A DNA stretch of 64,000 nt from Chrysemys picta bellii (GCF_011386835.1 NC_088802.1:496001-560000); one strand, 5' to 3'. Counted from the stretch's first letter, positions 28,728 to 55,779 are shown. Numbers and translations are program-made. The notes: generated by a model from the letters alone, not told the origin.

Positions 28728-30169
28728 CCAAATAAATTTGTTAGTCTCTAAGATGCCACAAGGACTCCTCGTTGTTTTCTCTGAGCATGTCTCCAGGGCA
28801 AGAAGCTTACACAGCTTTGACCTTCCTGGGTCTGACCTCAGAGCATTCAGCATCCCCTGCCCCTCCGTGCTCTTCCCACAGCGAGTCCACCCGGGCGGGG
28901 CTCTTGGGGGAGCCAGAGGGTCCTGCACCCCAGCTCCACAGTCAGCAGTGACTCTCAGCCATCCGGTAAAACAGAAGGTTTATTAGTCGACAGGATCACA
29001 GTGTAGAACAGAACTTGTCAGCAGAGAAATAAGTGACTTTCAGCCAAGTCCATCTTGGTGGGAGGGGAGCCCAGAGCCAGAGCTCTGGTCCTCCCGCTGC
29101 GCCCCAAGCCAGCCGAGACTGACTCACTTCCAGCTGCCTGGCCCCGCTCCTCCTCCGGCCTTTGTCTCGCATCCCCCTCTCCTGGGTCTCAGGTTACGAA
29201 GGGGTGGCCATAGCATCCATGCAGGAGCAACTGCTGCAAAAGTCACACAAGCTTATTCCCACCACCTAGACATAATAGACAGGGAAACTGAGGCACACAC
29301 AGCATTCGTGCAAAACAGTAAGACTCACATAGGCTTACATACAACATAACAAGGGCGAATCTCCCCTATGTAACATCCCAGTTACAGATGGTTTTTTTTG
29401 GGTGGGCCTCTGAGCTCAGGCCCTGGTACAATTGTTCCTCCCCCAGCCCCTGTTTGGATGTGTCCTTTGGTGATTTAGGGGCACTAGGGTGTGTTGTGTA
29501 CTAGGAGTGTCTGTGTTTGGATGGGTATGTTGCTAATGAGCCCTAGACTCATCCCCCTGCAGCAGCTCATTCTGGCCCTCACCCTGATGCTGGGGGCAGG
29601 CCGTGCCCGGACACAGGGGTTCCCGTTCCCATCCCAGCTCCAAGCAGCCTCTGGGGAGGGCAGACCCTGGGCACTGTTAACCACAAACCTGTGGGATGTG
29701 GCCTGGTGCCCCATAAGGAGATGCTATGGGGATGAGCTTACCCTGCCACAAGTCCTTCCCAAAATGTAACAGCTTGGACCCCTATCAAGGAGAGCTGGAG
29801 CACTGCAGGGGTGTGACTCTGGAGTGCTGAGGGGGTGGGGGTGCTAGATCTGGTGTGAGGGGCAGGGATCAGGACTTCCCAGGGGCTGGGGTGCTGGATG
29901 TGGTGTCAGGGGAAGTAGCATTATAGCAAGGGGATGGGGTCAGGAACCTGGAGACTGTCCCAGTTTGGTTTGGAGTGGGATCTAGTGGGATGGATAGAGT
30001 AGGGTGGGCTTGGATCCAGGACAAGTGGAACAGCAGCTGGACCTGGGTCACTGCTCTCTCTCCACTTAGCAATGGCCCAGCTGGGAGTTCCCTGATCACT
30101 TAAGCATCCAGCCCCTGGAACTGAGAGGAAAAACTATTGATTAGGGAATAGTGAGAGGGCTGCATGTCC

Positions 30170-32140
30170 GGATTGAGGGACACTGACAGAGCTGGGGGGG
30201 GCAGGACTGGGTAGCAGGGGGCTGTGGGTCAGGAGTGAGGGGCACTGGCAGAGCTGCAGCAGGAGGGAACCCAGGTTTGGGAGAGCAGGGGTCTGCAGTC
30301 AGGATTGAGGGGCACTGGGAGAGCTATCAGGGGAACCCAGGGCTGGGAGAGCAGTGGGCTGCAGTCAGGATTGAGGGGCACTGGGAGAGCTATCAGGGGA
30401 ACCCAGGGCTGGGAGAGCAGTGGGCTGCAGTCAGGATTGAGGGGCACTGGGAGAGCTATTGAGGGAGCCCAGGGCTGGGAGAGCAGTGGGCTGCAGTCAG
30501 GATTGAGGAGCACTGGGGGAGCTATTGAGGGAGCCCAGGGCTGGGAGAGCAGGGGTCTGCAGTCAGGATTGAGGAGCACTGGGGGAGCTATTGAGGGAGC
30601 CCAGGGCTGGGAGAGCAGGGGGATGCAGTCAGGATTGAGGGGCACTGGGGGAGCTATGAGGGGGAACCCAGGGCTGGGAGAGCAGTGGGTTGCAGTCAGG
30701 ATTGAGGGGCACTGGGGGAGCTATGAGGGGGAACCCAGGGCTGGGAGAGCAGTGGGCTGCAGTCAGGATTGAGGGGCACTGGGGGAGCTATGAGGGGGAA
30801 CCCAGGGCTGGGAGAGCAGTGGGCTGCAGTCAGGATTGAGGGGCACTGGGAGAGCTATTGAGGGAGCCCAGGGCTGGGAGAGCAGTGGGCTGCAGTCAGG
30901 ATTGAGGGGCACTGGGAGAGCTATCAGGGGAACCCAGGGCTGGGAGAGCAGTGGGCTGCAGTCAGGATTGAGGGGCACTGGGAGAGCTATTGAGGGAGCC
31001 CAGGGCTGGGAGAGCAGTGGGCTGCAGTCAGGATTGAGGGGCACTGGGAGAGCTATTGAGGGAGCCCAGGGCTGGGAGAGCAGGGGTCTGCAGTCAGGAT
31101 TGAGGAGCACTGGGGGAGCTATTGAGGGAGCCCAGGGCTGGGAGAGCAGGGGTCTGCAGTCAGGATTGAGGAGCACTGGGGGAGCTATTGAGGGAGCCCA
31201 GGGCTGGGAGAGCAGTGGGCTGCAGTCAGGATTGAGGGGCACTGGGGGAGCTATGAGGGAGCCCAGGGCTGGGAGAGCAGTGGGCTGCAGTCAGGATTGA
31301 GGGGCACTGGGAGAGCTATTGAGGGAGCCCAGGGCTGGGAGAGCAGGGGGTTGCAGTCAGGATTGAGGGGCACTGGGGGAGCTATTGAGGGAGCCCAGGG
31401 GGATGCTGGGAGAACAGGGGGATGCAGTTAGGATTGAGGGGCACCGGGAGAGCTATGAGGGGGAACCCAGGGCTGGGAGAGCAGTGGGTTGCAGTCAGGA
31501 TTGAGGAGCACTGGGGGAGCTATTGAGGGAGCCCAGGGCTGGGAGAGCAGGGGTCTGCAGTCAGGATTGAGGGGCACTGGGGGAGCTATTGAGGGAGCCC
31601 AGGGGGATGCTGGGAGAACAGGGGGATGCAGTTAGGATTGAGGGGCACCGGGAGAGCTATGAGGGGGAACCCAGGGCTGGGAGAACAGGGGGATGCAGTC
31701 AGGATTGAGGGGCACTGGGAGAGCTATTGAGGGAGCCCAGGGCTGGGAGAGCAGGGGTCTGCAGTCAGGATTGAGGGGCACTGGGAGAGCTATTGAGGGA
31801 GCCCAGGGCTGGGAGAACAGGGGGATGCAGTCAGGATTGAGGGGCACTGGGAGAGCTATCAGGGGAACCCAGGGCTGGGAGAGCAGTGGGTTGCAGTCAG
31901 GATTGAGGGGCACTGGGGGAGCTATTGAGGGAGCCCAGGGCTGGGAGAGCAGGGGTCTGCAGTCAGGATTGAGGGGCACTGGGAGAGCTATTGAGGGAGC
32001 CCAGGGCTGGGAGAACAGGGGGATGCAGTCAGGATTGAGGGGCACTGGGAGAGCTATCAGGGGAACCCAGGGCTGGGAGAACAGGGGGATGCAGTTAGGA
32101 TTGAGGGGCACTGGGGGAGAACAGGGGGATGCAGTTAGGA
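30170..32140. repeat. 66-bp satellite abutting the CUTA promoter
   Basis: Unit gggcactgggggagctattgagggagcccagggctgggagagcagtgggctgcagtcaggattgag; the 22-aa periodicity in the ORF track confirms 66 nt; roughly 29 copies. Confidence 0.95.
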
Positions 32141-32149
32141 TTAAGAGCC

Positions 32150-32340
32150 CCCGTCCGGGACGGATCCTCCCTGATGCTATAGGAGAGGGGAGGCACATGG
32201 TTGAGGGGGGCGGGACATAGTCGCGTGACTCAAGGGGGCGGGTTTGCGGCAGCAGCATGCTGCTGTCCTGGGTCACGTGAAGGGGGAGGGGGCGGGTCCA
32301 GCGCCGATTGCAGCAGCAGAGCCGCGCGGGCAGGTAGGAG
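32150..32340 (+). promoter_or_regulatory. CUTA CpG-island promoter and non-coding exon 1
   Basis: Three GGGGCGGG boxes, E-box GTCACGTGA at 32272-32280, 14-bp palindrome AGCAGCATGCTGCT at 32251-32264, donor CAG|GTAGGA at 32333. Confidence 0.7.
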
Positions 32341-32533
32341 TTGCAGCCTGGGTTCGCGCCAGCGCAGTGCCCCGCTGCCCCAGGCCTTGCGGGGGCTGCT
32401 CTCCCCTCGCAGGGAGGCCTGGCCCTAGGGGAGCGGGGCAGGGGAGCCGGCTCAGTTGGCTGTTTGCCCGTGCAGGGCTGGTCCCAGTCCCTTGGGCGGA
32501 GTCCCGCAGGGGCGGTAGCAGCGACACGCGCCG

Positions 32534-34155
32534 ATGAAAGCTGCCTGCTGCGTGAGTAAAAGCCTGACTGCTGCCGACCACCTATGGGGCTATGCCTCGC
32601 CCGGCGCTGAGATGCAGCCGCCTCTCGGGGGGTTCAGCGGCTGTTTACACTGGCGACGCAGTAACACACCTCCTAGTGCTAACCTGGGGCCAGTACTGAC
32701 TGCGAGGGGAGGGTGCCGTCAGCGAGACCCCCACCCAAGTCCCTGCAGTCCCCCAGGTCTGGCCCTTACTCTCACTGTCTCTTGGCCATAGGTGCTGTTG
32801 CTGTCCCTGTTGATGGTGCTACTGCTCCGAACCGTGTATCAGCGTCTCTTCTCCATGGCGGCTGAAGCCTATACCCCAGGGAGCCTGTCAGCTGCCTTCG
32901 TCACCTGCCCCAATGAAAAAGTGGGCAAGGAGATTGCAAGGTGGAGCTGGGCTCTATCCCCAGCTCTGGGAGGGAAGTGGGGGCTGGTGGGTTAGAGCAG
33001 GGGGGCTGGGAGCCAGGACTCCTGGGTTCTCTCCCCAGCTCTGGGAGGGGAGTGGGGGCTGGTGGGTTAGAGCAGGGGGGCTGGGAGCCAGGACTCCTGG
33101 GTTCTCTCCCCAGCTCTGGGAGGGGAGTGGGGGCTGGTGGGTTAGAGCAGGGGGCTGGGAGCCAGGACTCCTGGGTTCTATCCCAACTCTGGGGGGGGAG
33201 TGGGGGCTGGTGGGTTAGAGCAGGGGGGTGGGAGCCAGGACTCCTGGGTTCTATCCCAACTCTGGGGGGGGGGAGTGGGGGACTTTTGAGCATGGAGGAC
33301 ACTGATATGTATTTTTGTCCTGAGCAGGATGATGGTAGAGAAGCACCTGGCTGCCTGTGTCAACATCATGCCTCAGATCACATCCATGTGAGTGCAGGAG
33401 CCAAGTCCCCGGGCTCTATGGTCACTGCATTGGGCCTGGAATTGGGATGGGGGAGTGGCCTGGCCTTGCTGACTGGGGCAGGCTTTCTCTGTGTATCCCT
33501 CTCACCAGCTCCCCCTGCTGGTTTCTTTCAGATACGAGTGGAAGGGGAAGATCGAAGAGGACAGGGAGGTGCTGTTGGTGAGGGATCATGTGGGGAGGGT
33601 CTCTGTGGGATGGGGCATAAATCCCCTGCCTGTGTAGGCAATGGGGAGGCTCTAGAACCCCGGGCTCCGCCCTGCATGTTGGGGGGGGGGGGGAGGAGCA
33701 GCTAATGGAAACCCCCACCTTTCACCATCTGTCTCTCCCCAGATGATCAAAACCCGGAGTTCCCGGATCCCAGCGCTGACCGATTTTGTCCGGTCAGTCC
33801 ATTGTCCTTCTGTCTCCTTCTCCACCCTGTGGGAGCCTGCTGGTGGGGATGGGCCTAGGGAATTTCTGGGGTGGGGGGGGTGGAGTCTCGAGAGAAGGCT
33901 GAGTGTGTGTGGCAGGAGGGTTGCTGGGGGCGGTGAGAGGACATGAGTCTCTGGGGGGGTGGGGGTGGCAGGGGCAGAGTGGTGAGTCCCTGGGGGGAGT
34001 TACTGGGGAATCCTTGCCTGCTCCACCCCCTCTGACTTCCCCCATCTCCCTACAGGTCGGTGCACCCATACGAAGTAGCAGAGGTGATTGCACTTCCCAT
34101 CCAGCAGGGAAACGCACCATATCTGCAGTGGGTTGGGGAGACTGTGCCAGAGTGA
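32534..34155 (+). CDS. CUTA: CutA divalent cation tolerance homolog, 140 aa
   Basis: Exons 32534-32551, 32792-32940, 33328-33387, 33532-33577, 33743-33792, 34056-34155 (423 nt); [18 protein letters not shown]...[24 protein letters not shown]...[12 protein letters not shown]. The small first coding exon is less certain. Confidence 0.95.
32949..33280 (+). repeat. Tandem array of ~4.5 tRNA-like 75-bp units in a CUTA intron
   Basis: Unit has D-arm-like GGCTGGTGGGTTAGAGC and T-arm CTGGG-TTCTCTC-CCCAG; 25-aa periodicity in the ORF track. Confidence 0.85.
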
Positions 34156-34537: not shown

Positions 34538-35166
34538 GCAGGTGTCAGTTTGTACAGTCAGAATGGCGATGGTGACCACAGCATCAGCACACAGGGATGG
34601 GGGAGAGGGCACAGCTGGCCTGGGGGGAGGGGAACATATGCCGTCTGTACAGCAGGTTACAAGCAGGATGGATGACTGTGCTGGGGGGCACCCCTCTCCT
34701 CCCAGGCCTTGGGGAGCTGCCACCTCCCATTCCTGTGCCCCCATTCTGCCTTGGACAGCCCCATTGTGGCAGGGTGCCCCAAGCTCTGTCCTCCCCCCCA
34801 TTGCACTTCATTAAATAGAATTTTTACAGAATAATAAAAATGCAACAAGAAAATAAACCCTTTGAATACAATGAAGCATTTGCCCGGTGGGAGTGGGGAA
34901 TGCCCCCACCATCCACCCTAGGGCCCTTCTTTGAGCAGGACTAGGCAATTCCTGCCTTATATCCAAGCTGAGGGTGAGAGCCCCCCCTCCCCCAGTACAA
35001 TCCCCACTGCTGTCAGAGAGGGACAAATCCCTGACACTGCACTCTGTCCTGGGAGTTGCACTTGCTCAGTGTGTATGTGTGCGGGGGGGGGGGGGGGAGA
35101 GAAGAAAGGCTGACAACTCTCTGCAGCCCCAATAGAGGGGGTGTATCTCTGGCACTTCCCTCCCCC

Positions 35167-38100
35167 TCAGAACATGCCCCCTCCACCCCATTCCACCAGG
35201 TATTGGACAGTGCCATCGAGGGTGACCCTGCGGGCCAGGATGCGGACAGCCTCCCCACGAGCCAGGCGCCCCATGGCTCCAAAGTAGCTGCTGCTGGTGG
35301 GGGCAGGGCCCGGGCACAGAGCGCTGGAGGAGGAAGGGGAGGCCAGGGTCTCAGGCTGGTGCTTGGTGCTGGGGGCTGGGTAGTTTGCGTGGGGCAGTGG
35401 AGTGTGGGTAGGGGGATGCTCAGGGCTCTCGCTCTCTGGTGCAGGTGCTTCGCGGGGGTCCGGGCTGGCAGTGGTGCTCCTGTTATAAAACAAGGTGGAT
35501 CAGGGGAGCCTGCACCATGAAATGCTCCTCCCCCCCCAGTCCCAGCCCAGGGCCTGCTCCAGAAAGTACCTGCAAAGCCCTAACGTTGGGGTGGAGCTTC
35601 CCCCATCCTGGCCCGAACCAGTTTTAGAACTCCTTTCCCTCCCAGCCAGAATCAATTCTAGAATGGTCCCTCTCTGCCCTCAGCCTGCTCTAGAACCACT
35701 TAACAACCCAGTCTGCCGTAGAGAAAACAGCCCTCGTTCTAGAATGTCCCATTCCTTGCTTTAGAGTAGATACCATCCCTTGGGGCCTGCCCTAGAAACT
35801 GGCCTCTGAGCTGCCTCTAGGAGAGAGGGGCTGCTCTACCGAAAGCATACTTGTCCCACTGCATCACAGGATCCGGAGAAGGTAATGCCCTGGGACCTGC
35901 CCCTGTCCCTGCCTCCCCTCACCTCAGGGTCCGGGCAGTGTTGGCGGATGGGTGGAAGGAGGCAAACATCCTGATGGGAGCACTGTGGGCAAGAAAGAAT
36001 GAGAAATGGGGTGAATGGAGGGCTGGGCAAGGCGGCACCCCCACCCTGCCGGTCCCTCCTCACCTCTCCAGGCAGCGGGCGTCAGTGCGGCGGAAGTTGT
36101 AGGTGCTGGAGGTGCCGCTGTAGCCACAGTATGTCTGGCTAGCACTGACGGGGGTCTCCACCACCTCCTGCAAGGATGGACAATCAGTGGGGTGCCCTGG
36201 GAGGGTCCCCAAAGCACAGGGCAGGGGGGGCTCCTGGGGCAATGCGGGAGGCTGTGGCATACCTGGGTGAGGGCTCTGTCCAGCTGCCACTTCTCCCTGC
36301 TGCTCCTCAGCTCCATGATGTCTGTGGGTTCCGGGGGGACCTTGCGCCTCCGTGGCCTCCGGCGCCCTGCCCCACTGCTGCCCTGCCCTGAAAGGAAGCT
36401 GTAAGAGACCCTCCTTATCTGCACAGCACGCAGGGGGCCGCGCCTGCTCCACTGGGAGCCCAAGGGGGCTGGGTCAGTGACCCCTGATAGGAACGGGAGG
36501 CAAGGTAGAAAGACCTGCCCAGGCCCTGTGCCCCCTCCTGACAATACTGTATCTGCTGCTGCGGACCTAACCTGGTCCCCACAGAACTTCCCAGGGGGAA
36601 TGCAGGGAGGGAGCTCCCAAAGTCCTCTCCCTCAGTCCCCCATCACATCACCTCAGTGGTGTCCCTGCACTCCCACCCACCATGCCCTCTCCCCTGTATC
36701 TCCACCCTATGCTGCCCTTTTCACCCTAACCCCTTGCTGGAGCCCTGGATGGTGGCTGAATGTGTGGGGCAGGAGGAGTTGGGACAGCTGAGGCTGCTCA
36801 CCTGCTGTCAGTAAGTGGGGGCTGCCCCTGGGGTTGCTGAGCCGTGGAGCCACCATGGCCCCCAGGGCACTGAGGTGCAGGAGGTGGCACTCGTATGTGG
36901 AGCCCAAAGAGACCCTTCCGCTTCTTGATCTCCTTCCCTGAAATAAACCTGGAGAAGAAGAGAGACCAGACTCAGATCTGCAGGGCAAACAGCTCCCAGG
37001 CAAAAGCATCAGTAGCGGCAATGCAGGGGTGTCCAAGAGCCTGCATGACTGAGCGGGTGTGAGAGCCCGTGAAGACAGGTGCAGTTTCAGGTGGGTGCGA
37101 GGGCGTGGCAGAGTGTGCATCAGCTAGCGTGGTTCCAGGTGGGTGGAAGTGTGCGGAGGGGCATGCAAGAGCTGGTGCAACTGGGAGTGGGTGCGAGGAC
37201 ATGGTGGAGCATGTGAGGGCCATTGTGTGTGTGAGGGGGGCAGTGCAATTCAGTGAGGGTGCAAGGGAGTGGCAGCACATGCAAGGGCTGCCGTGGGTCC
37301 AGGTGGATGCCAGGGCATGGCAGAGTGTGATTCAGCGTGGGTGCGAGGACGTGGCAGCACGTGTGAGGGCCAATGTAGTTCCAGGTGAGCGAGAGGCAGT
37401 GGCGGAGCATGGCAGGCGTGTGGAAGCAGGGGCTACATAGGCAGAGCAGAGTGTTACAAAAGCTCCTCCCACCTGTCTTTGTGGCTGCTCAGGGCACTCA
37501 GCAATTGGCTGTACCGATCCCTCTTGGTGTATCCGAGAGCTGCAAGGACCAAATGAGAATGGATGAGGGATCAGTGAGGGCCATGGTCCAGAGACCCTCC
37601 ATTGCCTCCTGACTTCTCCACTTCTCCCACAGCATATCCACCCAGCCAGCTCCCAGCCAACCCTTGGAGTCCCTCCCACCCCATTCCACCCTCTCCTGGG
37701 TACCTCTCACCCAGGTCCCCAACCTTCCTCTCTCTCCCTTCTCTCCCACTCCTTGCTCATCTCTCTACCCCAGCCCTGTCCCCGTCCCCTTCCCCCTGCT
37801 CCCCATTCCTGCAGCCCCATTCCCCACCACTTCCCCCTGCTCCTTCTAGCCCTGTTTCCTCTCCCCCCACCCCTCATAGTCCACTCTCCCTGCAGCCCCC
37901 TTCCCACACCCAGCCCACCTCTCCTAGCAGCAGGTTGTCCCAGTTCTCGCTGGCAAACGGCAGAATCTCCCGCTCAAAGTCAAAGTATTTCTTTTTGCAG
38001 CAGATGCTAAGGTGATAGAGAATGAGATGGGCCACGTCCACCCTGTGGGGAGAGGGGGAAGGGTCAGTGCTGGCATGGTGGGGACATGTACTGGAGATGT

Positions 38101-41100
38101 GGAGGGGGGGAACCAGACTCACCATCTCAGGGGAAGTCTCCGTACGCTCTCAGGGCCCCCAGTGCAGACACAGCACTCGAAGACATAAAATCTGGAAGAG
38201 ACCCGAGGTGTGTGAGGGAGAATTAATCCTGGATCTCAGGGACCTCTCCCGCATGTGCCCGCACCTGTCTGTGTAGGGGAGTGAGAGGATCTTGCCTCCC
38301 CACCCCTGAATCTCCCTCTTGTCCCCTCACCTATATCCACAGGTAGTGGGGTGGATCTCACTTCCCTCCCCAGTCCCTCCATGCCCCCTCACCTGTCTCC
38401 ATAAAGCAGTGGCTTGCTCAGACACTGGGTACATGCCTCATGGAACCACTGGGCACAGCTGCAGCACTGCAACATCTTCAGGTTCCACCTGGGGGAGAGA
38501 GGGAGGCTGAGTGAGCACATGACTGAGGGGCAGCCTGCCAGGGGCCCCAGCACCCTCCCAACTGGAGAGAGAAAGGAGTTCACCTGGGGCATTTGCTGAC
38601 CCACTCCAGGCACCACCCAGCTCTAGAAATGCACTCCTCTCCACCCCATGAGCAGCTCCAGAAACCAGGGCTTGGAGCAGAGCCCAGAGCTGGAGCAGCT
38701 CCGGAGCAGCGGAGCTGCAGGTTTTTGCCTGGAGCTGGAGTGGAGCCGGAGAACAGCTCCAAAACCCTGCCAGAAACCTACCTTCTAGTCCAGAAACCCC
38801 ATCTCATCCAGCCTAGAAAAATCTCTCTCCCTTGGTGCAAGCTGCTGTAGAAACCTCCCCCTCCACCACACAACTCACTGCAGAAACTTCATCCCAGTCT
38901 ACAGCACTCAATCTGGAACTTGTACTGGAAAAATCTCATGCTGGAAGCTGTTTGGGGAATTTGTTTTACAAGGACCATCCAGCCTGGCTGGAGAAAAGAG
39001 CCTACCCCAACACAAGCTGCTTCAGGGACCTGTGAAAACCTGACCTGACTTTATAAACACTGTGCTACTCCCATGCCAGAAAAATCCAATTCCAGAAAGC
39101 ACTCCAGACTCTTTTCTAGAAACTGTATCTAACTTCAGAACCCAATCTAGAAACCCACTAGTTCAGAGCTCACTTCAGTACCATCCTCCCAAACCAGAAC
39201 TGGTCATAGAAAAAAGTTCCTCACATATTTAACCCCCACTCCCCACCATGGACTTTGCTGTGGAGACCTCATTCAACCACAAGACCACTTCTAGAAACCA
39301 TGCTCCTTGTTCTGAGCTAGCTCTAGAAATCTCTGGCTCCAACACCTGCTCTCGAAATTGACCTCCCTGTGTGAAGCCTGCTCTAGAAACCTCTTCCAAT
39401 TCCAGAACCTCCTCCCAGTCCAAAGCTAGCTCTAGAAATCCAAATCCAAATGGTCTTGCTGGACCTAGATAGAACTCCTGCTAATTTATCTCTGAAGTTA
39501 GAAATCCCTTTGGGGCAGAAGCAGTGGGTAGGTGTTACCTGCTCTATCAGGATCCAAATTGAGGGGCCTAGTTGCAATCTAGATCTGAAATGCTGCTGCT
39601 CAAAACGCCCACTTTGGCAGGAACAGGAACATTCCTGATTCCTGCTCTTTGTCACAAAGAAGCAGATGCAAGGGCAAGTGCTGACCTCAGGAATCTGCAA
39701 GACCAGAAGGGGAACTTACTCTCCAGGGCCTCCACAGTAGCAGTAACACTGCTGCCGATTGGTCAGGTGTGCAGGATCCCACTCCAGAGCCTTGAACTGA
39801 TAGGGCAGCACCAGCTTCATGCTCAACATGGCCTTGGCATAGGGGCCTTTCTTGAGCGCACCACCCCTCTGCAAATGAGAGAACAGAGAGAGGGCGTGTG
39901 AGACAGGCTGGACACAAATCAAACAGATCCATCCACAGAAGGACAGGAATTGGGAGGGTGGGGGGCCTTGAATCAGAGGGATGCACCTGCTGGGGGGAAG
40001 GGGACTCATGAGGGGATGGGAATGAGAGAGGCTAACCTGCTGGGGGGAGCGGGAGCTGGGGGGGGACACTTGCTATGTGGGGGACAATAGGAATCAGGAC
40101 ACCCACCCCCTTTTTATCAAAGGCATCACTGGGGACACAAGGGGATGATGTCTGGCCTCCCACACCTGCCAGCCCCGTGCTCACCTTGGTGGCCACAGCG
40201 AAGACACACTGCCGGCACATCCATGCACCAAGTACCCCAGCCCCATCGGCTGCTCGCATCCAGCACTCTGGGCAGGTGGCACTCCTGGTGGTAGGCTGCA
40301 AGGGGAGACAGCTGGTGAGAGAGGAGAAAGGGGGGTCCCAAGATGGCCAGAGGATGGCAGAGGAGGGGAGCACCACTTACTGTGCCCACATTTCTCACAC
40401 CGCACCAACTGGTTCTCTGGGCTCACGGACTCCGAGTAACATACGCAGCAGATCTGCTCCTCACCGGGCACGGCGGCTGTGGGAGAGAATGGAACCTGCC
40501 CAATTAATACCTTGCTGGGGGCAGCCCAAGGTTGGGATAGCAGGGGGCTGCAAGTCAGGACTGAGGGGCACCAGCAGAGCTGTGCATATGGAGAAAGCAT
40601 AGGTCTGGGATAGCAGGGTCTGAGGGCTGTGAGTGAGGGGCACTGGCAAAGCTGTGGGTGGGAAGCCCAGGCCTAGGACAGAAGGAGGCTGTGAATCAGG
40701 ATTGAGGAGTACCGGTAGAGCTGTGTGTGGAGGGAGCCCAGGGCTGGGGTAGTAAGGGGAGGAGCAGTGGGTTGGGAATAAGAGGCATCAGCAGACCTGA
40801 GAGGGCTGTGGGTCAAGACTATGGGGCACTGGCAGAGCTGCGGGGGGTGAGAGCCATGGGACTGTGGGCTTGGAGTGAGGGGCATGGTGGCAGAGCTGGG
40901 GCTGTGGGCTGAGAGCGAGACTACATCAGGACTCCAGTGCTCACCAGGGTTAATGTCCTTCCAGAGCACCAGGAACTGGGAATTGTCCTCAACTGCACCA
41001 GGCAAACCTGCCGTGAAGCATCCACCTGCCAGAGGAGAGAGGGGTGAGTGAGTGCAGGGACAGTCAGAGGAGGCGGCCCTAGTGTGTGTGTGTGGGCTTC

Positions 41101-41296
41101 ACTCACCTTCTTGATGGTACCCCAGATAGAGCAGGCCATCGGTCCAGCGGGCCAGCACATCCTGCCCCTCCCAGAAGCGGGGCCGGCTGGGAGCCGCAGA
41201 AGGGACCGGGGCAGCTGGGCGTTTCCAGGGGCCGGAGGTCAGGCGGGAGCTCGTGCGTGTCACCCGGGAAGTCTGAGCAGGTAGCTCGCTCGCCAT
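35167..41296 (-). CDS. PHF1: PHD finger protein 1 (Polycomb-like 1), 580 aa when repaired; four 1-bp frameshifts as assembled
   Basis: Exons 41296-41107, 41025-40945, 40476-40381, 40295-40185, 39868-39720, 38488-38393, 38191-38123, 38042-37919, 37539-37473, 36948-36802, 36398-36263, 36167-36064, 35982-35923, 35479-35167 (1743 nt). Tudor ([18 protein letters not shown]), PHD1, PHD2 (WNLKMLQC...[10 protein letters not shown]), EH domain, C-terminus [13 protein letters not shown]. Confidence 0.95.
38610..39620. repeat. Degenerate repeat with TCTAGAA core in a PHF1 intron
   Basis: About 7 exact TCTAGAA (38622, 39116, 39146, 39291, 39322, 39382, 39431) plus variants. Confidence 0.65.
40520..40920. 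repeat. Degenerate relatives of the 66-bp satellite
   Basis: gggggctgcaagtcaggactgaggggcaccagcagagctg-type units. Confidence 0.65.
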
Positions 41297-43329
41297 CACA
41301 TTGTGACCAATCTGCCATGTGAGGGGAGAGGGTCAGTCACCTGCCAGAGCTCAGGACAGAACCCAGGATTCTTCATTCCCAGCAACTGCATCCACTCCTG
41401 TGGGGTTCCTTTACATAGCAAGGGGGCATATTCTGAGTGAGAGGAGGGTCATAGATCTGGGGAGCTAGCCTTGGATTTGGGGTACCATTTATTAGGGGGT
41501 CTTCCAGAGTGAGGAATGTCTCAGAACCAGGGGTCATTTCTTGGAGGAGATCAGAACTAGGGAGGGATTCTCTAGGGTTGTCTCAGACCTAAGGGGCCTG
41601 ATCTGGGGTGTCCCAAATTCAGGGGCCCCTCTCTGTGGTATCTCAGATCTGGTGGACCGAACACTACGGTGTCTGGGATCCTGGTTTGTCCTCTCTGGGA
41701 GGATCTGGGGATGTGTCAGATTCAGGGGACCTGCTCTGGGATCTGACAGTTTCTCAGATCTGAGGAGCCCAGTCTTGTGGGTCTGAAATTCAGGGGGTCC
41801 ACACCGAAGTGTCTGGGATCCAGGAATGTCTTGGAGGTGGGGTACCCTCTCTGGGCGATCTAGAATCTGGGAGTGTCCCAGATTCAGGAGGGACTCTCCG
41901 GGGATGTCTGGGATCTGGGGGTATCTTCAATTTGGGGGGCATCTTTGGGGAGTCTGGGGGGTGTCCCAGGTTCAGGGGGCACTTGTCTTGGGGGTCTTGG
42001 ATTTGGGAGGGGTCTCTCAGGAGGATCTGAAATTTGGGGTGTTCCAGATTTGGGGGGCTCTCTGGGGGGATTCTGTGACCTTGGGGTGTCTTGGATTCAA
42101 GAGACCCTCTCTGGGAGGTAAAAATATCTTGGATTTGGGGGGTCTCAGTGGGGGGCTTAGATTTGGGGAGGATCTGGGGCCCTCTCAGGGATGGTTCTGG
42201 GGCAGTCTCTGATTCAGGGGCCCCTGGGATCTGAGAGTGTCCTGGATTCGGGGCCCCTCTCTGGAGTGTCTCAGATTAGGGGGCTTTCTCTGAGGTGAGT
42301 CTGGATCTGAGGTGCCTCAGATTCAGGAGGGCCCTCTGGGGTGGGTTTGGGATATGGTTTCGCTCAGACTGAGGGCATCTCAGTTGTGGGAGCTCTCAGA
42401 TGTGGCAAGAAGGAAGTCTGATTTGGGGGTGTCTCCTTTTGGGAGGATGGAGGGGCTCTCTGTAGCTGGCAGCCCATCTCTCTCCCCTGCGTGGGGGAGG
42501 GGGTGCTCCCTCCCTCAGCCTCTCCTGCCCTTACCAGGTCTCCGAGTCTCCTGTGAGGGTGGGGGCCGGCTCTCTCCCCTCCCCAGTCTGGGGAGGGGGG
42601 GGCTTCTCAGGGCTGAGGAGGCTGCCCCGGCCCTCAGGGGCTAAAGAGCAGGCCCCTCTGCGGCTCCATCCTAGAGCTGAGCCCAGTGACGCAGCAGCAG
42701 CAGCCGCCAGAGCAGGGGAGGAACGAGGGGGGATGCGGAGAGACGCTGGGGAGGGGACCCCCCTAACGCCCCCCTCCTGGCGCTGCCTGCAGAGCAGGCC
42801 CTCGGCACCCCCCTCAGGACCCCCCCTCCCCCGGATCTGCACTGACAGTGGAGCACAGCACTAGACAGCTAGGGGGGGCGGGGGATCTTCCACCTCTTAC
42901 GATCCAATTCCCTGCGCCAGCCAGGGTGGGATCACGTCCAGCTTCACCTACAGGAGCCAGGCCTGGACTCCTTTCCCAGCGCCCTGAGCCAGCCAGTCCC
43001 CACCCTGGGCCAGAGCGGAAATGACGCCCCATAGAGGGGAAAGGCCCCATGTCTCCTTCTGCAACCAGCCCTGGGGGTCACTCCTGTCTCCTTCCCTCCC
43101 CACTGCCCCCTCCAATGATCCCATTCTGCCCCCCTCCATAACTTTGTGCATCCTCTTCCCTGCCCTGTCATCCCCTTCAGCAACCCTCTGCCCTGCCCTG
43201 CTGTTAACTGCCCTCCAGCTGCCTCTTTCCCTTCTCCAGGATCCACCCTCTCCTCTGTCATTCCTGCCCCCAGCCCCTGCCCCACCCTCTACTTCTCCCC
43301 TTCTGCCCCCTCCACATTACTCTCCAATG

Positions 43330-44630
43330 CCCCTTGCTCCTGCCTCTCCCCCCACCCTGTCAGCCTTACTCCTGCCCCTCCCCTCCCTTCAACTACCTCT
43401 TTCACCCCTCCCCTTCTCCCCCCACCCTGTCATCACTACTCTTATCCCTCCCCCATTGCCCCTTTCACCCCTACTCCTGCCCTCCCTCCGCCCTGTCAGC
43501 CCTTCTCCTGTCCCTCCCCCACTGCCCATCACCCCTACTCCTGCCCCACCCCTGTCACCCCTATTCCTGCCTCTCCCCTTCTCCCACCCACCCTGTCACC
43601 CCAACTCCTGCCCCTTCCCCACTGCCCCTGCCATCCCTACTCCTGCCCCTCTCCCTTCCCCATCAGCCTTACTCCTGCCCCTCCCCTCAACTGCCTGTCA
43701 CCCAGACTCCTGCCCTACTCCCCATCAGCCCTACTCCTGCCCCTCCCCCACTTCCCCTGCCACCCCTACTCTTCCCTCACCCCATCAGCCCTACTTCTGC
43801 CCCTCCCCCACTACCCCTGTCACCCAGACTCCTGCCCCTCCCCCACTGCCCCTGTCACCCAGACTCCTGCCCCTCCCCTCAACTGTCACCCAGACTCCTG
43901 CCCCTCCCCCACTGCCCCTGCCATCCCTACTTCTGCCCCTCTCCCTTCCCCATCAGCCTTACTCCTGCCCCTCCCCTCAACTGCCTGTCATCCAGACTCC
44001 TGCCTTCTCCCCATAAGCCCTACTCCTGCCCCTCCCCCACTTCTCCTGCCACCCCTACTCTTCCCTCACCCCATCAGCCCTACTTCTGCCCCTCCCCCAC
44101 TACCCCTCCTGCCACCCCTACTCTTCCCTCACCCCATCAGCCCTACTTCTGCCCCTCCCCCACTGCCCCTGTCACCCAGACTCCTGCCCCTCCCCTCAAC
44201 TGCCCCTGTCACCCGGACTCCTGCCCCTCCCCTCAACTGCCCCTGTCACCCAGACTCCTGCCCCTCCCCCACTTCCCCTGCCACCCCTACTCTTCCCCCA
44301 CCCCATCAGCCCTACTTCTGCCCCTCCCCCACTGCCCCTGTCACCCGGACTCCTGCCCCTCCCCTCAACTGCCCCTGTCACCCAGACTCCTGCCCCTCCC
44401 CTCAACTGCCCCTGTCACCCGGACTCCTGCCCCTCCCCTCAACTGCCCCTGTCACCCGGACTCCTGCCCTTCTCCCCATCAACCCTACTTCTGCCCCTCC
44501 CCCACTTCCCCTGCCACCCCTACTCTTCCGTCATCCCATCAGCCCTACTTCTGCCCCTCCCCCACTGCCCCTGTCACCCAGACTCCTGCCCCTCCCCTTC
44601 TCTCCCCTAAGCCCTACTCCTGCCCCTCCC
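43330..44630. repeat. Pyrimidine-rich VNTR between the PHF1 and KIFC1 5' ends
   Basis: Units such as ctgcccctgtcacccagactcctgcccctcccctcaa and ccccatcagccctacttctgcccctccccca; almost no G on the plus strand. Confidence 0.92.
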
Positions 44631-44639
44631 CTAGCCCCG

Positions 44640-44968: not shown

Positions 44969-45099
44969 GTGAGAGGCGCGCGGGACCCGGACTGTCCCCC
45001 TCCCCCCGCTTCCCGGTGGGGCGGCGCGCGGGCTGGACTCCCGGGGGGGGAGGAGAGAGGCCCTGGGGCGGTCAGGTTCCTGAAGCACCGCGTGGGGGG

Positions 45100-45420
45100 G
45101 CGGAGGTAGCGCCATGGGGTGCAGGTGTTTGGGGTTGGGCTGGGGGGGTGGAGGCAGCGCCATGGGGTGCAGATGTTTGGGGTTGGGCTGGGGGGGGCGG
45201 AGGCAGCGCCATGGGGTGCAGGTGTTTGGGGTTGGGCTGGGGGGGGGCGGAGGCAGCGCCATGGGGTGCAGGTGTTTGGGGGGGTGGAGGCAGGGCCATG
45301 GGATGCAGGTGTTTGGGGTTGGGCTGGGGGGGTGGAGGCAGCGCCATGGGGTGCAGGTGTTTGGGGTTGGGCTGGGAGGGCGGAGGGAGGGCCATGGGGT
45401 GCAGATGGGTGGGGTTGGGG
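45100..45420. repeat. ~49-bp G-rich VNTR in KIFC1 intron 1
   Basis: aggcagcgccatggggtgcaggtgtttggggttgggctggggggg, about 7 copies. Confidence 0.9.
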
Positions 45421-45817
45421 AAGTTCCTGTTTCCCCTCCCCCCCACCCCTACCATTCACCTGCCTGTCTCCCCTTCTCCCCACGGGTTCACTTCAGAGCC
45501 CAGGACCCCAGCCGCTCCGCCCAGACCGGGGGGAGTGCTGCAGTGGGGAGTGTGACTTGGGCACAGGCGCTGAATCTGCTCCCATTGGCTTCCGCCTCCC
45601 TGTGTGGAAGGATTTTGCTTGGTCTCAGGTGAGCCCTCCACTCATGGGTACCAACCAGATCCTGCCCCTCCAGAGGGTCTCACCATGGCAGGGGCTGGGG
45701 TGTGACGGGGTGTGTATGGGGGGCGCTCACCCTGCTCTGGGCACACACACAGGCATCGGGGTGTCTGTATAACATGTGACTGATCAAGCCCCCTTACTCC
45801 TTCCCAGAGGTCCCCAC

Positions 45818-48800
45818 ATGGAGCAGAAGGGGAATGCTGATGGATGGCAGGTGCCACTTGCAGGGAAGGCCCTTTCCCAGCTGCCTGTGCCTGGCTTGAG
45901 GGCCAAGCGAGGGCCTAGTGATGAGAATCAGCCTCCAACCGAACAGGTGAGATGCGACAGGCAGATGTGAAAGGTGGTTTCTTGACCCACTTCATTTTCT
46001 TGTTCTCCAGGGCTCTGCTCCCAATAACTGTCTCCTCTCTTCCCGTCCCACTAGAAACGTGCCCGAAGGCTTCCCGTACCAACCAGGAGGGTGGCAGCCT
46101 CCATCGCTGCCACTTGTTCCAAGCCTTCGACAGCAGCTGCAATACCTAAGACTCAAAGAGCAGGTGAGCTCTTGGGAAGGGTGTGTGCTAGGACTGGTGG
46201 GTATATTTGCTTGCAGGATGCAGGGACCTTTGTGTTCATGAGAACAGGGAGCTGACACAAGGGGTCAGATGTTTCACTGCTAATGATGATGCTTCATGTC
46301 CACCACAGGCCGCCGGGCTTCGCTCCGACCAGGACTGACCATCCCAGCAGCCTCAGTTGCAGGTATTTGTGGGACTGGGGCTTTCACTCTGAGGGGAGAC
46401 TCCTTGTGACCTGGTGCCACTTGCCAAACCCAGCACTGTGATCCAGAGCTCTGTGGGACCCAGTACTGGGAAGACTGTTGGTGGGTGATACTTGCTAGAG
46501 AGCTGAGCACCCTCTGCCAACTGGAAGCCCCAGGCCTAGTCTCCCTTAGGGCCCTCTCCATGGGGAGCTATGAGCCTTATACTCAGCTCAGCTGCGTTTC
46601 TCTGTCAAACCCAATACTCCTGAATGCCACAATTGAACATTTCCCCCAAATTTTGGAACAGATCAAGGCAACAGTGGTCAGAACCCTAGTGACTTTGGGG
46701 GAAACCAGAAAACTGAAAGCGGGGGGGGGGATGTAGGGTGTAAGGCCTATGGAGTCCCTGCCATTGTTTTGGCATAGCCACATCCTTTAGCACCTCTGGA
46801 ATTGCCTACAGATCAAACTGCTGGTTGTGGGTGTGACCCATGGTGCCTGGTGCAGCCCTCACTGGAAATGCCAAGGTCAGGGCAGGTGGCAAAGGGGAGA
46901 GCAGATGCTCCCAAGACTGGTGGGTAACACTGAAGTTAAACTCCCCAAGCAGTCACAAACTGTGCTGCTGCTCCCTCGGCTATCAAGAAGCAAAAAACAA
47001 AACAATAAAAGGGGGGCTGTGTGATTTCCTTATTGCATTCCAGTTCTCTGGCTCCCAATCAGCATCTAGGTCCAGTACAGTGAGAAGTTATATGCTCACA
47101 TATACAAAATGTTCTTCTGACCCTGAAGGGTCAGCCACGTCACCAGGTCAGTATGGGATTGGATCTTACCCAAAATACTGCGCTGTCAGCCAGTCCTTTA
47201 TAATAAACAGAACAAGAAGAGAGATGGTAAAGTAGTCACATAGGTACAAATACTTTAAAGTTCATATATCAGGTTCCTAGCAGTATTGGTGAGTTTGCTG
47301 GCTTGAAAGTCCCTCTGGAATACATCCACAGCTTGGATGCGTCATTCAGTCCTTTATTCGGAGCTTCAGTTTGTAGTAAAGTTCTTCCAGAGGTAAAAAG
47401 CAGGATTGAAGACAAAATGGAGAAGATGCAGCTGTCTTTTATAGTATTTTGTCATGCGGCCTGTGCTTCCAATGTTTCAAACACAAGCTGCCCAACACAT
47501 GGCTTGGAAGCCTTTTCTGTCCATGGGCATGCCTTGCTGAGTCAGAAGGTGTATCCTCTGTCTTCTCTCAATGGGTCAGTTGTATAGCAGATGGTCCTTA
47601 ATGGGCCATCATGCTGATTCCAAACTGTCTGGGGGGTGTCACCCAGAAGCATAGCCCAAGTTTAAAATACAGACATGCATACATATCTATAACTCATAAT
47701 ACAAAAGGTGATCCAAATATATAAACAAGATTATCATATCTGGCAAATCATACTTTTGCAGATATCTTACATGGTATATCTGCCATAACTCATTACCAAT
47801 AGTGTAAAATTGCATTCATAGTATCCTAAAGTGTCCCCCAGATTCTATACAGCGTCACAGTGAGCACCCATGAACCCCTTCCTGCCTAGTGCTACTCCAT
47901 CTCATCTCTGTTCCTGCTCCCAATAACTTACACCCTGAGTATCTCCCAGATGGACAGAAGACAAATAATGGAGGGGTTTGACAATGAAGTGGGCATTTTT
48001 TGTGATATTTTTGATTCCTCTGTATGCCTTGGTTTCCTACTGTATTTTGCATTGCTATTCGGTGGGTGCAAAAGGATTAGAAAGATGCTCTTGTGGAAAA
48101 GAAGGAGACGTGAGGTGTTGCCACATGATTATCTGGGGTGGAATGAATGGGTCCTTAAAGGACTGGTTAAACCCGATCCATATCAATGGTGGATGCGCCA
48201 AGACAACAGGAGCCCCAAGAACTGAACAATTGACACTTATCCACCGGAATCTCCAGCAGGCGGAATATGTGATCTCCTCATGGGTCGATCTCTTGGGGAT
48301 AAGAGTTGGCTGTTGGAAGAAACTGTGCAGCCCTCACCTGTGGCTAGGGACAGCCAAGTTGGCTTTGATGAGAGCCTGGATCTAGGGATCCCTGGCCTGG
48401 CAGTAGCCAGGTTGAACTCTGCCTTAGTAAAAAGGCTAATGTAAGGATTTACAGATTATGGGGGAGGTGGGTATCTAATACATTATCTCATTATGGTAAG
48501 GCTGCCTGCTGTCACTGGAAATACTCACTGAAAGCATTGCACCCTGAAGGGGTATAGTACAAGTCTCCCATGGGAGTCTGGCTTGGCTGAATTCAGTGTA
48601 GTGAGCCACAGAAGCCCAGACCTGGTCCATACTAGGAAATTAGGTTGTCTAACTACATTGCTCAAAGGTGTGAAAAATCCACCCCCCAAAGCGATGCAGT
48701 AAAACTGACCTAACCCCCCAATGTAGACAGTGCTCGGCTGATGGGAGAATTCTCCTGTTCACATAGCTACTGCCTCTCAGGCTGTGGTGTACCTATAGCA

Positions 48801-51800
48801 AGGGGAGAACCTCTCCTGTCACTGAAGCACTACACTGGCGCAGCTGCAGCATTTTAAGTGTTGACAAGTCCCCTGTTTTGGATTCTTGGAGGCCATGGCC
48901 TGTCCCTGTAGAAGGGTGTGTGGGTCCTTAGGGCCTAGCACACTAAAGGGTTACTCCAAAGGGACCGGTTACAGGCTGGAGTATAGACCAGACCCTGTGG
49001 CTGCCTGACAGGTGGTAGCAGAGAGTCAGCTACTGAATGGTTTCAGGGACTATATTGTCAATTTGCCAAGTGCCATGTTCTGTCCTTGGGGCTCCCAGTG
49101 TTTTGGCTCATCCTCCATTGGTATGGGTCAGTTCCAGCCAGTCCTTTAACACCCATCTGTTCCACACCAGCCAGTTACATGACACAACACCTCCCATCTC
49201 CTGCTCTGCCCCAAGAGCAGCTTTTGAATTATTTTGCAACTGCTGGCTAGCAATGTAAAGTACAGAAGTAAACTGAGGCACACAAGAATCATAAAAATAT
49301 TACAGAAAATTCCTGTTTTGTCATGGGGTGCATACAGCCTCTGCAATGGGGAAAGAGGGGATTGGGGACACCTACAGAGCCATTGCAATGGAGGGAGAAT
49401 AGGCAAACAGCCCCTGCCGTGGGGGTGAGAATGGGGGGGGATGACACCTAAAAATGGGAGGCACACAACCCCTTGTGATAATAGTGGGAAGGGGGCACGC
49501 ATAACTCTGTGAGTTGCATGGAGTTCTGAAAAGAGGAGGATGGGAGGGTGAACAGAAAGATGCAAGGACGCCTGGGGCATGCCGGACCTCAGCATACAAG
49601 AGCTATGAAGTGTGGACCCCCTAGTTTACAAAAATGTTCAGTGTGTCCTGTTTCCTTGCACACAGCAGGCATTTTCCTTGCTCAGAGTTTCCAAGTCTGC
49701 CCCTCCAGTCAGCTCTCTGTTTCCTCTCACAGCCACTCTCACAACTGCTTGACCCCATGATTTGCTGTGAAGGAGTGGGAATTATTCATAATATTTTGGA
49801 TGAATATTGTGTGTGCCTCAGTTTCCCCTATGTGGTGTGTAGTTAACTAGGTCAGGGGGTGGGGGAGGAGGAAAGATTGTTTACTCTTTGCCCCAATCCA
49901 GAGATACAGGTGGGACCAACGCCTAGCTGGCTGGGTACCCATGCCCATGGAGAGTCTCAGAAGACAATGGCCACTCCAGTTATTGGCACCTAGCAACAAA
50001 CAACCATGGATGGCCCACCCTCCTTAGGAAGCCAGCTGGTGGACAAAGGACTAGAGAGCAGCCAGGTGGGGTTGTTAAGTGTGGGCTGCTGGAGGCAGGA
50101 AAGAACCTTCTGGACTGGGATCAAAGAGGAGTTAGAGGGCTCTGGACGGATCCAGATCCACCTGGCTGTAACTTTCCATTGTCTGTGTTAACTAAAGACT
50201 TGCTACGCTGTGTTACAGACATCTAATAAACCTTTCTGCTTTTACACTGCTGGCTGAGAGTCACCTTAGATCAAGGGAGCTGGAGGTGCAGTGCTCCCTT
50301 TGAGGGTGCAAGTCTTCCCCGGGTGTCCAACTCAGGTGGAGTCGCTATGGGGCACTCACAGCGGGAAGGAGGGATGCTGAAGGCTCTGAGGTTTGGGTCC
50401 GGAGGCAGTGAAGCCAAGAGGCCTACCCTAGTGAGTGAGAGACCCTAAGGAGGCTGACTCACTGAAGGGGTCCTCGCAGGGACTGTTCAAGAGCACGGGC
50501 CTGTAGTTCCATGACACGTGCTCTCCCCTTTCCCTCCGCAGATGTCGTCAGGAGGCCGGTGCCTGTGGCAGCAGCTCCAAAGATGGGTAAGGCGGCAGCA
50601 GGAGGGGCTTGGTGTCAAGAAGGGCTGAAGCCAGGGATGGGGAGAGGGATAGCCCTGCTGGCTCCAGCCTCATCTGCCTCTCCCTTTCTCCCCACAGCAG
50701 CCCCTGCCCTAGCTGCAGGGAATGATGGGAAAAAGCGGGCTGCCTGGGACCTGAAGGGCCAGTTGAGTGATATGCGGACCAAGGTGAGCAGCTACAAGGA
50801 CAAGGTGCAGAGACTGGATGGGGAGAATCAGCAGCTCAAGAGGCAGCTGCAGGAGCAGGTGGTTCAGAACCGGGAACTGAGCAGCCAAGTCAGGTGAGAA
50901 GCCAGAGGGCTGAGGGAGAGGGATCCTAGTTGTTCTGGTTGGGGGGGAATGACTCCTGCCCTATCTCACCCTGCCCCTACTTCTGTAGCACACTAAGCTC
51001 CGCGCTGCACACTTGCCAGGAGCAGGCACATCAGAGGCTCCACGAGGTGATGGAGCTGTCAGACCTGAAGCAGCAACTGGAGGAGCAGGTCACCAGCCAC
51101 AGCAGGACCATCGGGCAGCTAGAGGGGACCAAGCGGGACCTGTCATCCCTGCTGGAGACCAGAGAGGTGTGTCTTGATCCTGGGAAGGGGGGAGATGTGA
51201 TGTTAACCTCCCTCACTGGATCCAGAGCCGGGCCGATCCAGGTCATGTGGCTGGGGCCCGGAAAAAAGCTCAGCTCTTTAGTGGCATGTTCTGTGGTGCC
51301 TGTACTAGGATCTCCCATAACATGCTGTACCCTTAACCCAGCTGTGCCCTGTCAGATTCCTGTTCAGTAGACAGGTTATGTACCCATTGGGTCATCTGCA
51401 TGCTCTACTGAGAGGAACCAAGCCTTACGCAGCAGGTGCTGCAGCTTCCATGCATGGGCTCAATCTGCACCTCCTAGACACAAGCTTTGTTTCCTATAGC
51501 AACAGCTCAACCTTATGAAGGCTTTACATAGACTTGCTGGGACAACATTGTGCTCTGCTCCAGTCTCCTGGAAATTCCCCTATTGCCAATGTCACAACCC
51601 CACCTTGCTTTCAGGACTTAGTCCTGTGTCTGGCTGTTCTGCTTTAGTTATTGCCTTGCTGAGAGTGCTGCATCTCCGTAAAACGACTGCTGTCCTTGCA
51701 GGGTGTTTCAAAGGAACCTTTCCCCAGTATTCAGGCACCCAACTCCCTTTTAAAATCCCGGCCCTAATGTTGGGCCTCTTTGATTCACTTGCACTGCAAA

Positions 51801-54800: not shown

Positions 54801-55779
54801 TCCCTCTCCCTTCGCTGCAGCGGTGCTAAGCCTGGTGGACCTGGCAGGCAGCGAGCGGCTGGACAAGTCCTTCTCGAAGGGGGAGCGGTTGAGGGAGACC
54901 CAAGCCATTAACACTAGCCTCTCTACCCTGGGGCTGGTCATCATGGCGCTTTCCAACAAGGTAACAGCTAGGACACCCCATGCCCCATTATCAGCAGTCT
55001 CTTCCCCTCTTTCCCCAGGGCCAGTGGTCATAGTGCTGTAGGCAATGTAACATACCACCTGCATGCACCTCACTGCCCCCTCCCTCTCCCCCAGCCCTTC
55101 TCTGCCTGGTATTGGGGAGCCACAGTGAGGCCGGGGGCTGTCTGAGATAGATGTTATGAAATCTCCCTGCCCAGGGGTCCCAACATGGCCCCTTCTCATG
55201 GACTGTGGGGAGCTGACTCCTGTCTTCCCACTCTGCAGGAGCCCCACATACCCTACAGGAACAGCAAGCTCACCTACCTGCTGCAGAACTCGCTGGGGGG
55301 CAACTCTAAGATGTGAGTAACAATGGGGGGGGGCAGTAGGAATAGTAGGAGTGGGGAGGAGGGATGAGGTGAAGATGTATGGAGAAGGATATAGCACCAA
55401 GGTGGAGGGCAGGGCTATGGGACACACTGTATGGACAGAGAGTGGAGGGAGTCTAAGAGTTAGAGAATGTGCAGGGACACCAGGTGCTGGGGGTGGTGCC
55501 AGAAGAGTGCTTCTGCAGGCCCCTCTAACCTCTGTTCCTCCTCTTTCCAATGCCCCCAGGCTGATGTTTGTGAACATCTCCCCGCTGGAGGAGAACTTGT
55601 CAGAGTCCCTGAACTCCCTGCGCTTTGCCAGCAAAGTAAGTGACTGACTGGTGCGTGGCTCAGGCAGATGGAAGGGGGTTGCCCATGTTACAATGCTGCA
55701 GCTTCCCGCTCAACTCCATCTCTCCCCCTTCCAGGTGAACGAGTGCGTCATCGGAACAGCGCAGGCCAACAGGAAGTGA
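45818..55779 (+). CDS. KIFC1: Kinesin-14 motor KIFC1/HSET, 646 aa
   Basis: Exons 45818-45946, 46055-46163, 46309-46362, 50542-50586, 50698-50893, 50989-51166, 52054-52221, 52405-52533, 53763-53879, 53963-54136, 54259-54426, 54507-54645, 54821-54960, 55239-55312, 55560-55635, 55735-55779 (1941 nt, no frameshift). [15 protein letters not shown]-loop [39 protein letters not shown]. Confidence 0.96.
46832..47859. mobile_element. Solo LTR (~1 kb)
   Basis: Inverted termini TGTGAC...GTCACA; flanks GTGGG / GTGAG (4/5 TSD-like). Confidence 0.7.
47975..49325. mobile_element. Two inverted, diverged LTR 5' fragments (47975-48200 plus; 49140-49325 minus)
   Basis: Mutually homologous in opposite orientation and similar to the start of the LTR at 49766. 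Confidence 0.55.
48620..48871. mobile_element. Old palindromic MITE (GTCTACAC/GTGTAGAC family, possibly Harbinger-like)
   Basis: Internal atgtagacagtgc, ends ...aagtgttgacaagtccc, internal inverted gggagaattctcc; boundaries approximate. Confidence 0.5.
49766..50516 (+). mobile_element. Solo LTR (Gypsy-like) ending 25 nt before a KIFC1 exon
   Basis: TGTGA...ATGACA termini, internal AATAAA at ~50225; TSD not convincing. Confidence 0.6.
53040..53410 (-). mobile_element. Old CR1 LINE fragment
   Basis: [17 protein letters not shown]...[22 protein letters not shown] matches the CR1 ORF2 C-terminus. Confidence 0.82.

Follow-up and report, generated by a model that had tools for sequence, protein, structure and literature searches.

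The best-described counterpart of the gene considered here is human PHF1 (PCL1), the Polycomb-like subunit of Polycomb repressive complex 2.1 (PRC2.1; 5XFN, 5XFO, 5XFP, 5XFQ), in which a Tudor domain, two PHD fingers (PHD1 and PHD2), an extended homology region and an Mtf2_C domain follow one another. The same order is found at the PHF1 locus of a 64,000-nucleotide (nt) stretch of Chrysemys picta bellii DNA (GCF_011386835.1, NC_088802.1:496001-560000; hereafter the window, with all positions counted from its first letter), and the neighbours of the human gene, KIFC1 and CUTA, are likewise found beside the turtle gene. Unlike in human PHF1, the reading frame in the window is, as written, broken four times, and here KIFC1 stands head-to-head with PHF1. 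As set out below, these four frame breaks are very probably local consensus errors of the assembly.

According to passages in two reports, long-read assemblies carry gene-breaking indels (PMC12007338, PMC9262707). In the class of consensus errors to which these passages refer, as at the present locus, insertions and deletions of 1 base pair (bp) lie in short runs, cluster in a GC-rich stretch and affect coding and non-coding sequence alike, and a conserved gene comes to resemble a pseudogene. The PHF1 locus departs from this class in having runs of no more than 1-4 bases and in that the case made here rests on comparison. With a unitary pseudogene it shares frameshifts and a premature stop at the ancestral locus. 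In contrast to such a pseudogene, however, it shows no relaxed constraint, i.e. no replacement, nonsense change or splice-site loss, and its lesions are not common to the nearest sequences, namely an RNA contig (L004, see below), intact at the one coding lesion that it covers, and the PHF1 proteins of Chrysemys picta bellii, which are intact.

Exons were compared one at a time in database searches, and the lesions were placed by aligning the DNA with five contigs of transcript origin and with the genomes of two other turtles. Hereby, all four 1-bp frameshifts that a first-pass annotation of the window had reported in PHF1 were recovered, exons 1 and 4 being one base too long and exons 2 and 9 one base too short (Table 1). 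The positions proposed for the first three lesions were borne out by the alignments to the transcripts and to both genomes, whereas the fourth had to be moved: in place of a missing G at 37519-37521, a C is missing from a CCC run, where the window reads ACACCAAGAGGG, the other sequences read ACACCCAAGAGGG and the orthologues encode T-P-K-R-D. Lesion 2 removes the Phe codon of the motif VQFEDNS. As had been stated before, the net change in length is zero, the exon lengths adding up to 1,743 nt, which corresponds to 580 codons and a stop codon. Read as written, the translation is right for 59 residues, wrong for about 17, right again until the middle of PHD1 and out of frame thereafter. According to three-frame translation, the frame shifted by lesion 3 then runs into a TGA at 38440-38438 in exon 6, just where the earlier annotation had placed it. 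All 13 introns carry AG/GT borders, and three-frame translation reveals no in-frame stop in the locally correct frames of the PHF1 exons, in agreement with the intact splice sites and the lack of nonsense changes described previously. The earlier assignment of all lesions to short homopolymers applies to three of them, in which a run of identical bases changes its length by 1 bp (GGG to GGGG, TTT to TT and CCC to CC); lesion 3, a single C that is doubled, is hardly a homopolymer and represents a borderline case.

The set of sequences used for comparison consisted of RNA-derived contigs (L001-L014), whose species were assigned by similarity, and of the genomic loci of Platysternon megacephalum (L015) and Pelodiscus sinensis (L016). 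In five of the RNA contigs, stemming from at least three other turtle species, exons 1, 2, 4 and 9, as far as they are covered, each show a 1-nt gap relative to the window, while the other coding exons align without gaps, save for gaps in exon 10 that keep the frame. At all four lesion sites, the frame is likewise intact in the Platysternon and Pelodiscus genomes. Among eight turtle sources, the lesions are private to the window. Turtle PHF1 proteins were reached by a search with exon 8, by a word search with the Chelydra protein and through a cluster listing; the word search covered lengths up to just under 580 residues, and full-length emydid RefSeq PHF1 proteins may exist beyond it. The retrieved turtle and alligator proteins all read LYLGTIKK, VQFEDNS, DASSDGAG and TPK(R/G)D, the last of these being TPKRD in turtles and TPKGD in alligator. 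The comparison with related turtles to which the first-pass annotation had pointed thus finds the lesions absent and the frame intact in RNA contigs, genomes and proteins alike. Searches for other samples of the species were negative: an exact look-up of the open reading frame (ORF) of the window that spans lesion 2 gave no match, the 141-residue genomic ORF that extends across exon 2 and intron 2 likewise found nothing in a word search, and no emydid fragments were returned when the N-terminal 160 residues of Chrysemys PHF1 served as query in such a search.

When read in the locally correct frame, about 424 PHF1 residues of the window occur as exact strings in Chrysemys picta bellii PHF1. The piece encoded by exon 1 matches the Chrysemys N-terminus exactly, and the pieces from exons 1 and 5 match only Chrysemys among turtles, which assigns the window, from its sequence, to that species or to an emydid closely related to it. 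The last 88 residues are 100% identical to the Chrysemys picta bellii protein, and exon 12 agrees with it at 34 of 35 positions, the sole difference falling on a splice junction of the model. Over about 545 comparable codons, no amino-acid replacement relative to this protein was found. If frameshifts are assumed, as we do here, to make up 1/7 of neutral coding changes, the chance of four neutral frameshifts without a replacement amounts to about (1/7)^4 = 4e-4, and the combination seen in the window would thus be improbable under neutral decay.

A near-identical transcript is available for the 3' part of the gene. The RNA contig L004, which extends from exon 8 into the 3' untranslated region (UTR), shows 4 mismatches in 1,024 nt relative to the window (99.6% identical). 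Apart from these four substitutions, the two sequences differ by two 1-bp indels, one at the exon 9 lesion and one in a G run of the 3'UTR, and at both of them L004 agrees with all other turtles (CCC in exon 9, GGGG in the 3'UTR). Within-species diversity or heterozygosity of C. picta bellii is high, with reported values of 0.48-0.55% (PMC13077969). Because the difference of 0.4% falls within this range, L004 may be conspecific with the window.

Private indels are also found outside the coding sequence. To count them, a three-way alignment of the PHF1 locus was made from the window, Platysternon as the sister family and Pelodiscus as the outgroup, yielding 5,638 confidently aligned columns, and the counts were limited to events with clean flanks in all three sequences. 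Hereby, 68 substitutions and 11 1-bp indels (5 extra, 6 missing bases) are private to the window, compared to 51 substitutions and one 1-bp indel private to Platysternon. Given the 68:51 split, the binomial probability of at least 11 of the 12 indels falling on the window is, by our own calculation, about 0.01. Seven of the 11 window-private indels are non-coding, and the 11 as a whole fall mainly into runs of C, G or T. When the exons are aligned one by one to the transcripts, the picture is similar, with eight private 1-bp indels in the window versus 0-3 in each other sequence. The window-private 1-bp indels of the 5'UTR exon and the introns, mostly in C or G runs, lie within 42470-42905 and 41548-41982 (with sites at 42470, 41982, 41961 and 41548 among them) and at 38906. 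The non-coding private indels probably share their origin with the four coding lesions. Since selection cannot explain an excess of 1-bp indels in introns and UTR, this excess in unselected sequence points to sequencing error and not to gene decay.

The density of 1-bp indels also varies along the window. In pairwise comparison with Platysternon, there are 31 1-bp indels per 96 mismatches at 40-44 kb, compared to 12 per 265 at 45-51 kb, where KIFC1 lies, and none in the kilobase at 39-40 kb, which is richer in AT. In the same pairwise comparison, the counts increase with GC content (Spearman 0.43, p 0.036).

The first-pass annotation had favoured local consensus errors or an unpolished haplotype, a preference supported by the privacy of the lesions, the lack of replacements in about 545 codons, the intact exon 9 of the 99.6% identical transcript and the 11:1 excess of private indels. 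We infer that the lesions arose in sequencing or assembly instead of in the animal. Mechanistically, base-calling or consensus errors would have left insertions and deletions in short runs of a GC-rich stretch, and the minisatellite-flanked PHF1 stretch was probably poorly covered or poorly polished. Several points weigh against this explanation. The evidence is indirect, being comparative. A high-fidelity assembly with good coverage would rarely contain errors in runs as short as 1-4 bases. Of the coding lesions, the near-identical contig L004 spans lesion 4 alone, besides the 3'UTR site; lesions 1-3 can at best be compared with the Chrysemys picta bellii protein. Moreover, about 2 kb of nearby coding sequence, comprising the KIFC1 motor, CUTA and the 3' half of PHF1, is unbroken, so that the errors would have to be patchy.

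Alternatively, the sequenced individual could carry a real private or rare null allele of PHF1, the four-frameshift haplotype being the one that was assembled. The lesions are present in the sequence, replication slippage is possible in short runs too, and the high diversity of C. picta bellii quoted above (0.48-0.55%; PMC13077969) is compatible with such an allele. It would, however, demand that four independent frameshifts and seven non-coding 1-bp indels had gathered on one haplotype without a single replacement, and it would have to accommodate a surplus of 1-bp indels without a corresponding surplus of substitutions, while the transcript of conspecific-level similarity and the Chrysemys proteins are intact. 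We consider this explanation unlikely. A slightly slimmer chance still is given to the frameshifts being real and of natural origin, as a PHF1 null haplotype that a wild emydid turtle would probably carry in heterozygous form.

A recent inactivation of PHF1 in the turtle species as a whole, i.e. a fixed loss of this PRC2.1 accessory subunit, would fit a net-zero set of frameshifts that leads to a stop before PHD2 is complete. It is nevertheless hard to reconcile with about 545 codons free of replacements, with intact splice sites and an intact Mtf2_C domain, with the intact exon 9 of L004 and with RNA runs that contain exact words of the locus, which suggests expression; in addition, the other sampled turtles all express an intact 5' coding region. 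A fixed loss is thus highly improbable. That the exon model itself is wrong, with alternative splicing or programmed frameshifting making up for the breaks, deserves next to no credence: exon 11 with its two acceptors 11 nt apart does demonstrate alternative splicing in PHF1, but transcripts of four other turtle sources have identical exon borders and differ by a single base within each of the four exons, and no GT/AG alternative near the lesions restores the conserved residues.

In the favoured reading, PHF1 would be a normal, single-copy and expressed gene of an emydid turtle very close to Chrysemys picta; the locus is the orthologous one and no stray copy. From the raw sequence, three-frame translation and transcript alignments, PHF1 was identified on the minus strand with 14 coding exons between 41296 and 35167. 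Its orthology follows from domain matches, from the alignment to human PHF1 and from the conserved neighbours KIFC1 and CUTA. The exon 1 piece matches Tudor_2 (E 9.6e-06), a partial match that as a single exon lies below the gathering score, the exon 6 piece matches a PHD domain, and exon 14 encodes Mtf2_C (PF14061; 61.3 bits, the cut-off being 27; E 1.1e-16). The best match of exon 5 among solved structures is human PHF1 residues 123-172, with 50 of 50 alignable residues and 83.5 bits, compared to 71.2 bits for MTF2. With turtle PHF1, exons 3-8 share 97-100% identity. Kinesin exons flank the gene on one side and CutA1 exons on the other; the order KIFC1-PHF1-CUTA is identical in Platysternon and Pelodiscus, and the head-to-head arrangement of KIFC1 (45790-55776, plus strand) and PHF1 is found in Platysternon as well.

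Table 1. Exons, lesions, private non-coding indels and repeat arrays at the PHF1 locus of the window.
Feature	Position	Strand	Description
PHF1 5'UTR exon	~43344-42535	-	contigs L001-L003 and L005 align
Coding exon 1, start of Tudor	41296-41107	-	190 nt, 189 expected; ATG at 41296-41294
Coding exon 2, Tudor	41025-40945	-	81 nt, 82 expected
Coding exon 3, first half of PHD1	40476-40381	-	intact; translation, transcript alignments
Coding exon 4, second half of PHD1	40295-40185	-	111 nt, 110 expected
Coding exon 5	39868-39720	-	intact; three-frame translation, solved-structure sequence match
Coding exon 6, PHD2	38488-38393	-	intact; translation, PHD match
Coding exon 7	38191-38123	-	intact; three-frame translation, comparison with turtle PHF1
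Coding exon 8, extended-homology / winged-helix region	38042-37919	-	intact; translation, protein searches
Coding exon 9	37539-37473	-	67 nt, 68 expected
Coding exon 10	36948-36802	-	intact; sequence, transcript and protein comparison
Coding exon 11	36398-36263	-	intact, two acceptors; transcript alignments
Coding exon 12	36167-36064	-	intact; transcript and protein comparison
Coding exon 13	35982-35923	-	intact; transcript and protein comparison
Coding exon 14, Mtf2_C	35479-35167	-	intact; stop codon at 35169-35167; domain match, protein comparison
Lesion 1, exon 1	41123-41120	-	+1; GGGG versus GGG in seven other turtle sequences
Lesion 2, exon 2	40992-40991	-	-1; TT versus TTT elsewhere
Lesion 3, exon 4	40249-40248	-	+1; CC versus single C elsewhere; AGCAGCCGATGGG versus AGCAGCGATGGG
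Lesion 4, exon 9	37527-37526	-	-1; CC versus CCC in eight other turtle sequences including L004
Private 1-bp indels, 5'UTR exon	~42905, 42751, 42714-42718	-	exon-by-exon and three-way alignments
Private 1-bp difference, 3'UTR	35158-35160	-	GGG versus GGGG in L004, L003 and L005
Minisatellite, 66-nt unit x 29.5 copies	within 30157-32119		located between CUTA and the adjoining gene; 90% matches
C-rich array, 35/60-nt unit	within 43405-44632		upstream of PHF1
Minisatellite, 48-nt unit x 7	within 45093-45419		

With respect to the neighbouring genes, the earlier annotation had described about 3 kb of KIFC1, CUTA, SYNGAP1 and COL11A2 coding sequence as free of indels. No break is seen in the KIFC1 motor domain and in most CUTA exons; the first CUTA exon aligns with gaps. 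The motor exons of KIFC1 (53733-55644, plus strand) cover positions 30-325 of the Kinesin profile in consecutive stop-free pieces (30-67, 66-122, 122-177, 175-218, 224-276, 269-298 and 295-325). Four CUTA exons align separately and gap-free to transcript L005, and a fifth (34054-34152), which forms part of a longer 3'UTR alignment with gaps, agrees at 33 of 33 residues at the protein level. The first CUTA exon (32329-32554) is 86% identical to L005, with 16 gapped bases in three openings, which could reflect either natural divergence of the N-terminus or UTR or more assembly error. A Pfam scan gave no domain matches for the long minus-strand ORFs at 4.5-14.7 kb, which are possible SYNGAP1 exons, and none for the plus-strand segments at 46.4-51.9 kb, the N-terminal part of KIFC1.

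Besides the genes, the window contains GC-rich minisatellites that flank PHF1 and have related arrays in Platysternon and Pelodiscus, as well as a run of N at 56366-56865. In sequencing archives, 14 DNA-like runs under seven organism labels contain 0.82-0.89 of the words of the stretch. For six RNA runs the share of exact words is 0.07-0.11, which suggests that the PHF1 locus is expressed. The ceiling of 0.89 was considered as a sign of errors private to the assembly and dropped, as it is explained by the within-species diversity of about 0.5% (PMC13077969).

Exon 11 deserves separate mention. Its start (36387-36400, minus strand) contains two acceptor AGs 11 nt apart, of which the upstream one (exon start 36398) preserves the frame and the downstream one (exon start 36387) shifts it towards a stop in exon 12. 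The downstream acceptor is used by L002, L003, L004 and L005-L014, the upstream one only by the Pelodiscus-like L001. In the contigs with the downstream acceptor, the ORFs end at 377-427 residues and Mtf2_C lies in a separate ORF of 156 residues. Use of the downstream acceptor may thus regularly produce a shortened isoform without the PRC2-binding tail.

A related observation was made in a further turtle. The PHF1 model of Mauremys mutica (P0236), when compared with exon 1 of the window (41100-41330), follows two frames with at least three switches between them, suggesting that the Mauremys mutica assembly has indel errors at the same GC-rich exon 1.

In conclusion, the PHF1 locus (about 35-43 kb of the window) contains roughly two private 1-bp indels per kb. 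Reads are needed before any gene model, pseudogene call or selection test from comparably GC-rich parts of this genome can be relied upon. Judged from the comparisons above, the frame breaks are very probably no real feature of PHF1. If they were real, nature would have knocked out a PRC2.1 accessory subunit which reads H3K36me3; a vertebrate would then manage with a single copy, or none, of a conserved Polycomb accessory factor, which would be relevant to PRC2 targeting.

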